From NCBI GenBank assembly GCA_002269645.1, contig NIVC01002296.1, forward strand, positions 1 through 64,000: 64,000 bases of DNA, read 5' to 3'. Numbering within the stretch: the stretch's first letter is position 1; the number at the start of each line of letters is the position of its first letter. The notes beneath the pieces were generated by a model, which worked only from the letters and a program-made list of their open reading frames with translations, ran no database searches and had not been told where the DNA came from. Both the position numbers and the translations under genes were made by a program. Positions 49,801 through 52,800 of this stretch are shown here, piece after piece. Source of the stretch: Macrostomum lignano. Lineage: Eukaryota.

Positions 49801-52800
49801 AAGGCGAGCTGGAGATCCGGCAGGACCTGCAGGCTGGCGGCCAGAAATTCCCAATCAAGAAGTGGAAGAAGCGGTTCGCGGCCCTGTGCGGCCACCAGCT
49901 GGCCGTGTTCAAGGACAAGAGCGGTGAGCTGGGGTGGGGAGCTGCTGGTGGGGAGCTGAGGGTGTGGGGAGCTGGGGTGTGGGGGGGCTGAGGGTGTGGG
50001 GGAGCTGAGGGTGTGGGGGAGCTGAGGGTGTGGGGAGCTGAGGGTGTGGGGGCTGGGGTTGTGGGGGAGCTGAGGGTGTGGGGGAGCTGAGGGTGTGGGT
50101 GAGCTGGGGTTGTGGGGGAGCTGAGGGTGTGGGGGAGCTGAGGGTGTGGGGGAGCTGGGGTTGTAGGGGAGCTGAGGGTGTGGGGGAGCTGGGGTTGTGG
50201 GGGAGCTGGGGTGTGGGGGAGCTGAGGAGGAGCTGAGGTGGGGGAGGTGGGGTGGTGGAGCTGAAGGTGTGGGGGAGCTGAAGGTGTGGGGGAGCTTAGG
50301 GTGTGGGGGAGGTAGTTGGGGTGGGGGTAGGGGTAGGGGGGTATTAGAGGTGCTGGGAGCTGTAGTGCGGAAGTTACTGGGCAGGAAGTTGGTGCTGCTT
50401 GTAAATTTTTATTCCAGAAAGCTCAGATTTTTGTTGGATAAAAAGATGTGCTGCCAGCTTTTTAGACTTAAACAAATTTAAAATGTTAAACAATGACCGC
50501 TCAATCCGTGTTTTATATTGTATTGTATATGTGAATTTGCATGCGCCTGTTCAACACAATACTACTTGCAGTAGGCCATCCAGTGTTTGCTTGCCGCAAT
50601 ATTATTGTATTAGTAAGTGTCGGAGTTTTGTACTGAATGAGAAACAATACATACCTATATGCATATTTATAAGCTACTTATCTCATAATTATTGACAATA
50701 TTTAAACATTTCCCCATTATATTTTTATTCCAAATTTTCTCCTTTGTAGCTGGTAAGTGTAATTTTAATGCAGCCGGCAAAATTGCCCAATCAAAGCAAG
50801 CCGTAATGATTGAAATATCAGATTTTCCATTCAATAAAGTCACCTGATTGCCTAATGAATATTAATTGCCCGTGTGATTGGCTGAGAGCGCCGCTCACGC
50901 ATTCAGCACAGGCAGGTGCTTCACTCCCGCCCACACCTTTGCGCCCCATTTCAGCCGGTATGTCGTCACCAGTCGTTTGTCTCGACCGGGCCAGCCCGAG
51001 TCCTCTGATTTTGTGTTTTTTTAAACCCGCGTCATTTTTATCAAGCTACTCATAGTAGCTAACTGGCGCATTTTTGTGTAATCGTGTTTTTATAACCGGA
51101 AAATAATCGAATTCTTTCTTTACCGATTCGACTTCCACTCGCGTTTCTATTTTCGTTTGGCGACAGAGTCTACTGCGATAATTTTTCTGTTTTTGTCTGT
51201 GCAATTTATCTTGCGCAGTTCACCAAAATCCTTCACGCCAAGACTAATCATTCACTAGTGTACCTTTCGTGCCTGAGAGGTTTGATTTGCATAACGATCA
51301 CCGTTAGACCTAATTCTAAGTAGTTTGATTTAACCGCCAGTTCTAGTGGCTGGCTGTGTGCTGAGTGCCACTAATCTGTGGGATTTGTGCGCCTTGTGAT
51401 GGTTGGCCGAAATAGCGCAGCGGATCGGGCATAAGCGCGTCTTTGGGTAGTGGAAGCGGATTATCGGAGGCAGATTAGTGGAAGCGGATTATCGGAGGCA
51501 GATTAGTGGAAGCGGATTATCGAAGGCAGATTAGTGGAAGTGGATTTTCGGAAGCAGATTAGTGGAAGCGGATTATCGGAAGCAGATTAGTGGAAGTGGA
51601 TTATCGGATGCAGATTAGTGGAAGTGGATTATCGGAAGCAGATTAGTGGAAGCGGATTATCGGAAGCAGATTAGTGGAAGCGGATTATCGGAAGCAGATT
51701 AGTGGAAGCGGATTATCGGAGGCAGATTAGTGGAAGTGGATTATCGGAAGCAGGTTAGTATAAGCGGATTATCAGATGCAGATTAGTGGAAGTGGATTAT
51801 CGGAAGCAGATTAGAGGAAGCGGATTATCGGAAGCAGATTAGTGGAAGTGGATTATCGGAGGCAGGTTAGTGGAAGCAGATTATCGGTAGCTGATTAGTG
51901 AGATTTGATTATCGGAAGGCGAACGAAGGCAGATTATGCAGATTACGAAGGCTAATATAAAACAGTGGAGATTGTGGAGCACAAATTTGGGAGCACAAGA
52001 GCGCAGCGCATCGGAAATTCGCGCGCAATGTACTGCAATCTGATTTTTGCGCTCTTGTGGCGCTCAAGATGGGCGCGTATCGAATGCCCCCCAAATTCCA
52101 GTTCTCAGCCACTGTAGCTGCCATTAGCAGCTTAATTAATAAATTAATTTAATATAAAAAGATATGAATTAATAAAAATCAATCTAACCTACTGTCAGTA
52201 AAGTCTAGCGCTTGTCTCTCCCCCTCTGCCGGTGTGCCAGCTCACGTGACCGGGGACACCGCCCAGCACACCCTCATGATCCACGGCTGCCGCTGCGAGA
52301 TGGACGCCGAGCACCGGCACGCCCTGCGGCTGCACCTGCGCGACGGCTCGCTGTACCTGCTGATGCTGCCCACCGCCCAGGACTGCCTGACCTGGCAGGG
52401 CCAGATCAGCTTCAAGGCCAGCCTGGATCCCAGCAGGCAGCTCGCCGATATCCGCCAGGAGGCCGACGAGGACGTCACCGAGGGCGGCGGCGCTGCCGAC
52501 GATGTTGATGACAAGTTCGACGCCGACGATACCACCGTCAGCCTGGAGGTGTCGCTGCGGGGCAGCGGCGGTGCCAGTGGCATCAAGCACGCCAGCGTGG
52601 CCGCCAGCCCGAGGCCGGCCAGTCACGTGACCTCGGGAACCCCGCCGGCCTCCCCGGCTGCGGCCGCGCCGGTCCCGACAGAGCGAAAATCCGCCACCCT
52701 GGCCGCCTCCGGCTCGCCAAGGGCCGCCTCCGTTGCCGGCGCCACTCCGACGGCGTCCGTCTCGACTGTCTCGTCTGGCAAGTCGCGGGCCGCCCAGCTT

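Follow-up and report, generated by a model that had tools for sequence, protein, structure and literature searches.

The PH domains of the cytohesins can carry an extra glycine, which lies in the beta1-beta2 lipid-binding loop. In cytohesin-1, ARNO and GRP1 this residue is encoded by a conserved 3-nt cassette exon that distinguishes diglycine from triglycine PH isoforms, and its presence measurably switches affinity between PI(3,4,5)P3 and PI(4,5)P2 (PMC6314551). Exons of 3 nt are also known from the classical cases of mouse Ncam and Drosophila troponin T (PMC8042270). Bilaterian animals have a neural microexon programme that depends on the eMIC domain of Srrm234 (SRRM3/4), and its exons of 3-27 nt are associated with long AG exclusion zones and with UGC near the 3' splice site (PMC8797185). 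Among flatworms, Schmidtea mediterranea has regulated microexons of 3-27 nt under MBNL/CELF, and among those with differential regulation, inclusion is mostly higher in differentiated cells (PMC4978528). As a kind, 3-nt microexons are already known, and the spectrin candidate described here is a further case.

The candidate consists of two acceptor-NNN-donor units, unit 1 with the triplet CTG and unit 2 with CCG, located in an intron that interrupts the PH domain of a spectrin gene from Macrostomum lignano, a flatworm. The cytohesins are the closest precedent. Common to both systems, in spectrin as candidates, are a 3-nt cassette exon, the addition of one small residue to a PH-domain loop and a pair of isoforms; however, the cytohesin residue is Gly and switches lipid affinity, whereas the spectrin residue is Ala, lies in the beta3-beta4 connection and has its inclusion indicated indirectly, by a deposited protein. 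Ncam and troponin T likewise have single-codon cassette exons between canonical sites, but in unrelated genes and with exons shown by cDNA, while the spectrin exon is still a candidate. The size class and the AG-free zones of both units resemble those of the eMIC programme, with UGC present in unit 2 only; unit 1, which has none, departs from the programme in this respect. The planarian cassettes are similar in being flatworm exons of 3-27 nt, and YGCY-type motifs (TGCT, CGCC) can be read by eye upstream of unit 2, but Schmidtea belongs to another flatworm order.

The window, meaning the whole stretch of 64,000 nucleotides that was analysed, is NIVC01002296.1:1-64000 of M. lignano assembly Mlig_3_7. 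Gene BOX15_Mlig003403g1 occupies positions 16668-57110, and its deposited product, P0108 (PAA59092.1), has 4092 aa. Pfam CH, Spectrin, SH3 and PH domains were found on this product, which we assign to beta-heavy spectrin, a protein that we take to be marked by CH domains, some 30 spectrin repeats together with an SH3 domain, a PH domain at the C terminus and a length of about 4000 aa. Many of the nearest relatives of the PH domain are proteins of 3700-4700 aa. The deposited gene model also has annotated small exons of 27 nt (53515-53541), 51 nt and 60 nt. The 51-nt exon, at 28431-28481, had been overlooked in the first-pass annotation of this DNA, and the host intron, there numbered 29, is the 30th coding intron of the deposited model.

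The features of the host intron are collected in Table 1. The last letters of the upstream exon, up to 49923, are ...GACAAGAGCG (TTC AAG GAC AAG AGC G, phase 1), with gtgagc coming next; the downstream exon begins CTCACGTG at 52241 and is preceded by ...gtgtgccag. Between two minisatellites, of 17-nt and 28-nt period, lies an island (50340-51447) that is single-copy within the window by self-BLAST, which suggests that it is not a repeated element. Rfam and tRNA scans of the intron (49924-52240) gave no match, and no ORF was found in it. Between the two units, near 50786 and 50878, are CCAAT-like boxes (CCAAT and ATTGG).

Table 1. Coordinates in the window of the candidate microexons, their splice sites and the surrounding exons, intron and repeats.
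Feature	Position	Strand	Remarks
Upstream coding exon, 30th in deposited model	49041..49923	+	Linker and first half of PH domain; P0108 reproduced exactly with this exon; Pfam PH match
Phase-1 GT-AG intron hosting both candidate microexons	49924..52240	+	2317 nt; donor and acceptor flanks identical in three genomic copies
17-nt G-rich minisatellite	49950..50339	.	5' border of unique island
Unit 1, 3' splice-site region	50674..50749	+	74-nt AG-free zone; T-rich tract ttttctcctttg; acceptor tag at 50747-50749; no TGC
Candidate microexon 1, CTG	50750..50752	+	G|CT G|CT, giving Ala-Ala
Unit 1, donor gtaagt	50753..50758	+	6.2 bits by the gene's own PWM
Unit 2, 3' splice-site region	50916..50954	+	37-nt AG-free zone (50916-50952) and acceptor AG; tract tttgcgccccatttcag; TGC at -38 and -15
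Candidate microexon 2, CCG	50955..50957	+	G|CC G|CT, giving Ala-Ala
Unit 2, donor gtatgt	50958..50963	+	6.9 bits by the gene's own PWM
28-nt minisatellite	51448..51918	.	3' border of unique island; includes third AG-CNG-GT heptamer, CAG at 51751-51753
Downstream coding exon	52241..52834	+	Second half of PH domain and C-terminal tail; begins CT CAC GTG ACC

In full, unit 1 reads ttttctcctttgtag|CTG|gtaagt, with AG-CTG-GT at 50748-50754, and unit 2 reads tttgcgccccatttcag|CCG|gtatgt, with AG-CCG-GT at 50953-50959, both on the sense strand. In each, canonical AG and GT dinucleotides surround exactly three nucleotides within the host intron. The first-pass annotation had described this pair, as tag|CTG|gtaagt and cag|CCG|gtatgt in the unique island of a phase-1 intron, and the sequence bears it out, including the spacing of 205 nt and the presence of TGC upstream of unit 2 only. 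The AG-free zones, there put at about 75 and 38 nt, are one nucleotide shorter on measurement. Translation confirms that each unit would keep the frame and add one alanine (GCT or GCC); inclusion of either introduces no stop and leaves the full 4092-aa protein. The idea that the units are a duplicated pair was not upheld, as their flanks (50601-50850 and 50851-51060) share only chance 7-8-mers and have no homology.

Standard annotation had been expected to miss both units, but the GenBank protein PAA59092.1 already has one extra alanine. At the junction P0108 reads FKDKSAAHVTGD, that is FKDKS-AA-HVTG, and the near-identical copy g3 (P0002) reads FKDKSAHVTGD, with a single Ala. Over 3079 aa the two proteins have 15 substitutions and one polyQ indel between them, and otherwise differ in this one alanine, which sits exactly on the splice junction. 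From the window sequence, 33 canonical GT-AG exons and one 3-nt insert at the FKDKS/HVTG junction give P0108 without any mismatch; the other 32 junctions of the model are all canonical GT-AG. The inserts that reproduce the protein are unit 1, unit 2 or a 3-nt GT..GC extension of the next exon. Neither the skip form nor an extension of the upstream exon reproduces it. NAGNAG tandem acceptors have the same outcome, isoforms that differ by one residue, but at the spectrin junction this mechanism is ruled out, as is a tandem donor: in the three genomic copies there is no AG 3 nt upstream of ...gtgtgccag|CTC. Judged from the sequence, the CTG and CCG units are the only credible canonical sources of the three extra nucleotides, and mRNAs that contain these nucleotides at the junction very probably exist. 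Since the extra alanine of the deposited protein falls exactly at the junction, at least one of the units is probably real.

The M. lignano annotation is RNA-based, having been produced with two-pass STAR, StringTie, BLAT of de novo transcripts, TACO and TransDecoder (PMC5730564), and STAR without prior annotation misplaces microexon reads (PMC8831610). From this indirect RNA-level evidence, a single annotated protein, we infer that the extra codon represents real reads with three additional nucleotides, the triplet coming from unit 1 or unit 2. From what can be reasoned about the aligner, a 3-nt shift to a non-consensus acceptor is a plausible footprint of such misplacement. Reads with CTG and reads with CCG would both end as one GT..GC junction with one mismatch, so that STAR placement cannot separate unit 1 from unit 2. 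A search of metagenome contigs with the junction pattern, allowing a 0-6-nt gap, gave no match, which is unsurprising for a flatworm kept in the laboratory.

To evaluate the units against chance, position weight matrices (PWMs) were built from the gene's own 32 introns and simulated introns were used as the null. The bare motif AGNNNGTANGT is not enriched, with 7 found vs 5.3 expected. Its combination with a usable pyrimidine tract and a donor is rare, the simulated mean being 0.23 such 3-nt units gene-wide, and in introns simulated with the gene PWMs a single intron has two of them with a probability of about 0.003. In a scan with a generic metazoan score, in which 14 spacings between 0 and 27 nt were tested, the CTG and CCG units were the sole units of their kind on either strand of the window at any of these spacings; the same scan also recovered the annotated 27-nt exon. 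With any in-frame spacing from 3 to 27 nt allowed, 1.6 units are expected gene-wide by chance, and this, together with the post-hoc choice of the units, makes the significance moderate. The gene's own splice sites prefer a C-rich tract, cag and gtgag. By its PWMs the acceptors of the units score 4.2 and 4.5 bits, above 7-8 of the 32 real acceptors, and the donors (Table 1) score above 3 of the 32 real donors; acceptors and donors alike are below the median, and they are no weaker than the sites of the annotated 27-, 51- and 60-nt exons. The acceptor tag of unit 1 occurs in just 2 of the 32 real acceptors of the gene. Among intronic AGs, just 1.4% and 6.1% have AG-free zones as long as those of units 1 and 2, respectively.

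Three genomic copies (the window, L001 and L004) show no difference in the exon ends or in either unit. Copy g3, which is annotated with the skip form, has splice sites and units identical to those of g1; SNPs at -71 and -110 nt distinguish the two. The flanks are 98-99% identical among the three copies, and 41% of 300-column intronic windows have three or fewer substitutions; because most of the flanking intron is equally alike, there is no sign of constraint on the units. All 16 orthologous PH domains match the skip form in loop length, as does that of an M. lignano paralogue (UniRef A0A1I8IJN6, 60-69%), which makes the insert lineage-specific at best.

The spectrin domain has the PH fold, with 1.6 A rmsd to 1btn, and the triglycine-variant structures 1u2b and 1u27 are among its fold matches. 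In the beta-spectrin structure 1BTN, IP3 is reportedly held between beta1-beta2 and beta5-beta6. The extra alanine is located in the beta3-beta4 connection, a loop of the C-terminal PH domain. The first-pass annotation was right in placing the insert in a PH-domain loop; its remark that this PH region binds phosphoinositides was too loose, the site being the beta3-beta4 connection.

The explanation that we favor, at a probability of about 0.6, is that Mlig003403g1 has a genuine 3-nt cassette microexon in at least one of these units. The units would be recognized by intron definition. Inclusion of unit 1 would divide the 2.3-kb intron into two introns of ordinary size, 826 and 1488 nt, and inclusion of unit 2 into introns of 1031 and 1283 nt, in either case leaving a C-N-G triplet between ...AGCG and CTCACG... 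and converting FKDKS-A-HVTG to FKDKS-AA-HVTG. When both are skipped, the whole intron would be excised at once and the loop would keep its ancestral length. The additional alanine would lie on a surface element, at the open end of the PH fold that faces the membrane. Given this surface position, the functional effect that we infer for it is likely a small change of loop geometry and not a change of fold.

Against a genuine cassette stands the reading that both units are chance decoys and that the extra alanine in PAA59092.1 is an artefact of annotation or assembly, produced by a misplaced junction, by a Trinity error or by reads that were mapped here but stem from an allele or copy missing from the assembly and bearing a 3-nt indel. 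The lack of enrichment of the bare motif, the 1.6 in-frame units expected by chance, site scores below the gene median and the conserved loop length of the skip form are all in keeping with decoys, and an artefact would be eased by a genome with large duplicated blocks, on which each read could be mapped to as many as 1000 places (PMC5730564). However, the sole exception among otherwise canonical junctions is found exactly where the units offer a C-N-G triplet, and the occurrence of two 3-nt units in one intron is improbable by chance. Skip-form reads fit the GT-AG junction perfectly, so the aligner would have had no reason for a 3-nt shift, and the exon ends are identical in the three assembled copies. 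Decoys with an artefact are considered unlikely, though by no means negligible. The opposite reading, proposed in the first-pass annotation, is that both units are used as twin microexons, either in combination (A, AA, AAA) or mutually exclusively, and possibly under different regulators; one might be a default exon and the other a neural one that depends on an Srrm/eMIC factor. The tandem would then provide a spacer of 1-3 Ala in the beta3-beta4 connection, with UGC/YGCY-binding factors promoting inclusion of unit 2 and the long T-rich tract that of unit 1, and standard annotation pipelines would collapse all products into one extra codon. The units are similar in strength and each gives Ala, the UGC/YGCY motifs are near the 3' splice site of unit 2 only, and an ab initio gene parse took in both. 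By our reasoning a 6-nt insert is probably unmappable in an end-to-end STAR pipeline, and an AAA form could escape detection in this way. But the annotation has only one extra Ala, the units have no homology to each other and no AAA product is known; joint use is a doubtful reading that we put forward tentatively.

Two further sources of the triplet can be imagined. The three nucleotides might be CAG. Their source would be either a real but non-consensus GT..GC acceptor lying 3 nt before the next exon or the last of the three canonical AG-CNG-GT heptamers in the intron, the other two being units 1 and 2. Lengthening the next exon by cag does reproduce P0108 exactly, but to our knowledge GT..GC is not a known type of spliceosomal intron. 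The heptamer at 51751 has a strong donor (11.5 bits, at 51754) but a purine-rich acceptor with 5 of 15 pyrimidines (-4.8 bits), and a CAG origin is highly improbable. Scarcely credible is the notion that the units are recursive-splicing ratchet points or belong to an internal promoter that would start from another first exon. The near juxtaposition of acceptor and donor is what a ratchet point would have, and the CCAAT and ATTGG boxes between the units are what a promoter might have. However, with either unit the new junction, for unit 1 AGCG|CTGgta, has no regenerated GT, the only GT coming after the three nucleotides, which therefore cannot be removed recursively; by its sequence neither unit is a recursive splice site. 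In addition, the intron is just 2.3 kb long and contains no ORF, ncRNA or tRNA.

A genuine 3-nt cassette at this junction would be of modest practical value, amounting to an amended gene model and two isoforms that can be tested. It would also illustrate how an RNA-based annotation can conceal a 3-nt exon while near-identical gene copies differ by one residue at a splice junction, and such one-residue differences between copies are a signature that can be searched for genome-wide. If it is confirmed, no single-codon microexon in a spectrin PH domain would, as far as we know, have been reported before it. Flatworms would then have an equivalent of the diglycine/triglycine switch of the cytohesins, in a laboratory model amenable to transgenesis and RNAi.

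The deposited product of the window gene, P0108 (PAA59092.1, g1; 4092 aa), reads ...AVFKDKSAAHVTGD... in its PH domain, while P0002, the product of the near-identical gene copy g3, reads ...AVFKDKSAHVTGD... The two proteins are set apart over 3079 residues by 15 substitutions, a single polyQ indel and this alanine, which falls exactly on an exon junction. The junction spans a phase-1 intron of 2317 nt between 49923 and 52241, number 30 among the coding introns of the deposited model. Without an insert (the skip form) there is a single alanine between FKDKS and HVTG; one inserted triplet gives two (AA) and two triplets give three (AAA). 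Rebuilding P0108 residue for residue from the window took 33 canonical GT-AG exons and a single 3-nt insert, placed at this junction. Neither the skip form nor an extension of the upstream exon reproduced P0108, and no NAGNAG acceptor is present at the junction. Three inserts yield the identical protein: CTG at 50750 (unit 1), CCG at 50955 (unit 2), or cag, taken by starting the next exon 3 nt further upstream, which implies a GT..GC intron. The exon ends, donor and acceptor are the same in three assembled copies.

Features of the unit-bearing intron and its bordering exons (window positions)
Feature	Position	Strand	Context
Upstream exon end ...GAC AAG AGC G	49923	+	then gtgagc
17-nt G-rich minisatellite	49950-50339		5' flank of single-copy island
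Single-copy island	about 50340-51447		between 17-nt and 28-nt minisatellites
Unit 1, ttttctcctttgtag, CTG, gtaagt	CTG 50750-50752		within island
Unit 2, tttgcgccccatttcag, CCG, gtatgt	CCG 50955-50957		within island
28-nt minisatellite	51448-51918		3' flank of single-copy island
Downstream exon start CT CAC GTG	52241	+	preceded by ...gtgtgccag

There are three canonical AG-CNG-GT heptamers in the intron: the two units and one inside a minisatellite, which has a purine-rich acceptor (-4.8 bits). The AG-free zones of units 1 and 2 are 74 and 37 nt long; 1.4% of intronic AGs have a zone of at least 74 nt and 6.1% one of at least 37 nt. Unit 2 alone has TGC, at -38 and -15. The first-pass annotation had described the units correctly in every sequence statement except the intron number, given as 29; its further view of them as a duplicated pair is not borne out, the units not being a duplication. 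Recursive splicing was excluded because the new junction regenerates no GT, and Rfam and tRNA scans found no Rfam family or tRNA in the island. CCAAT and ATTGG boxes lie between the units at about 50786 and 50878, upstream of cattcagc/ccagtcg, which hints at promoter-like sequence.

The gene was parsed ab initio, the parse was corrected against the deposited protein, and donor and acceptor matrices were derived from the gene's own 32 introns. Genuine sites in the gene are marked by C-rich tracts; 29 of the 32 acceptors are cag, and the donors are gtgag or gtgcg. On this scale both units score below the median, with acceptors of 4.2 and 4.5 bits against a gene median near 10 and donors of 6.2 and 6.9 bits against about 10.4. 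The annotated exons of 51, 60 and 27 nt in this gene, with acceptor scores of -6.7, 2.5 and 3.3 bits, respectively, are still no stronger than the two units. When each intron was simulated with a first-order Markov model, 3-nt units of equal quality averaged 0.23 gene-wide, and the probability of at least two of them in one intron was 0.003; as a caveat, the expectation rises to 1.6 units if any in-frame spacing of 3-27 nt is accepted. By a generic metazoan score, units 1 and 2 were the sole such units on both strands of the window across 14 spacings in the 0-27 nt range. A further caveat is that the bare 11-mer AGNNNGTANGT showed no enrichment (7 found, 5.3 expected). The acceptor-N-donor scan that flags the 3-nt units also recovers an annotated 27-nt exon.

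That exon, 53515-53541 (ADGDSSSDE), is flanked by ...cattgccgcag and gtttgt and is annotated in P0108 and P0002. The 51-nt exon at 28431-28481, whose tag acceptor is T-rich and whose gttgga donor is weak, is in both deposited proteins; the ab initio parse missed it, as did the exon count of the first-pass annotation. The parse also picked an unannotated candidate exon at 53849-53920 (72 nt, open, in-frame) containing an AG-CAG-GT unit at 53872-53874 (ccggccag, CAG, gtgtct) with a high acceptor score. An in-frame acceptor pair lies 51 nt apart at 44488 and 44539. The deposited model takes attcgcag/GTG at 44539; ccctag/CAC at 44488 would add 17 residues and is a possible alternative 3' splice site. 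Many introns have their own minisatellite. The same 28-nt unit (GGAAGCGGATTATCGGAAGCAGATTAGT) flanks exon 52241-52834 on both sides (51448-51918 and 52842-53252), and the last intron is filled by a 1.5-kb CT-rich 21-nt array and a (GTCT)n array (54122-55645, 56079-56629). A mariner-type transposase fragment (30498-31226, + strand; Pfam PF01359, E = 3e-8) lies in the 2.7-kb intron 29906-32610. An open frame at 7209-7595 (+ strand) hits the amiloride-sensitive sodium channel family (Pfam PF00858, E = 2e-12) at its C-terminal end, which suggests that a DEG/ENaC gene lies upstream of the spectrin one.

The first-pass annotation had expected standard annotation to miss both units; it did not miss both, as the alanine in P0108 attests. 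The M. lignano annotation merged, with TACO, StringTie assemblies of RNA-seq reads mapped by STAR (end-to-end, two-pass) and de novo transcripts mapped by BLAT, and TransDecoder called ORFs on the genome-derived transcripts (PMC5730564). Skip-form reads are a perfect fit to the GT-AG junction, so the extra codon must derive from reads or transcripts 3 nt longer than the skip form. STAR mis-maps microexon reads when prior annotation is lacking (PMC8831610), and from its placement of junctions we infer that it would set a CTG or CCG read as exon plus cag with one mismatch, giving AA. The true 3-nt exon may instead have been picked up in two-pass mapping, through partly spliced reads. By either route the annotation points indirectly to a +3 mRNA, with both units as possible sources of the triplet; a 6-nt insert (AAA) was probably not mapped at all by this pipeline. 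The best reading is that the intron contains at least one 3-nt microexon that is genuine and probably alternative (probability about 0.6). Use of both units, as in the twin arrangement, is possible but unlikely.

The gene is of the beta-heavy spectrin type, with CH, spectrin-repeat, SH3 and PH domains. The P0108 locus (L002, NIVC01002296.1:6668-67110, gene at 16668-57110) is 100% identical to the window, which therefore corresponds to the first 64 kb of that contig. A word-indexed protein search gave only an M. lignano protein of 69% identity, with one Ala. P0002 was a 100% match in an exhaustive protein search, and its cluster holds PAA80495.1 (Mlig003403g3), PAA59092.1 (g1), PAA47992.1 (g2) and PAA58124.1, all from Macrostomum lignano. 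The gene occurs in Mlig_3_7 as at least three near-identical copies (L001, L003 and L004: NIVC01000578.1, NIVC01004269.1 and NIVC01002409.1), with 0.55% exon difference and intron substitution rates of 0 to 15%, the higher values falling where minisatellites make alignment unreliable. Truncation, or a loss of frame towards the end, affects some of the deposited models (g2, Mlig014000g1). Units 1 and 2 have the same sequence in the window, L001 (g3) and L004, with flanks also 98-99% identical; 41% of intronic 300-column windows are equally conserved among the copies, and the identity of the units carries no information on constraint. A second beta-heavy-like M. lignano spectrin paralogue, 60-69% identical (P0001, P0003, P0111; UniRef, ML2 assembly), has a single alanine in its PH domain (LFKDKT-A-YNTGD). 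This paralogue and 16 beta-heavy spectrin PH domains all have the skip-form loop length, so that the AA form requires a private one-residue insertion, which makes the skip form ancestral and the insert lineage-specific.

Single-codon microexons are established in mouse Ncam and Drosophila TnT (PMC8042270). The closest known case to the spectrin units is the conserved 3-nt exon of the cytohesins, which extends the PH domain by a Gly and switches its PIP3/PIP2 preference (PMC6314551). An AlphaFold2 model of the AA form (pLDDT 86) adopts a PH fold in which beta3 spans residues 38-42 and beta4 residues 57-60; between them, A47-A48 lie in a short helical turn at 45-50. It superposes at 1.6 A on 1btn, the beta-spectrin PH-IP3 structure; sequence hits were obtained too. 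In that structure the inositol phosphate reportedly binds between the beta1-beta2 and beta5-beta6 loops. The modelled insertion would share the open end of the barrel with the inositol phosphate site, yet lie outside that site, and could possibly affect membrane binding.
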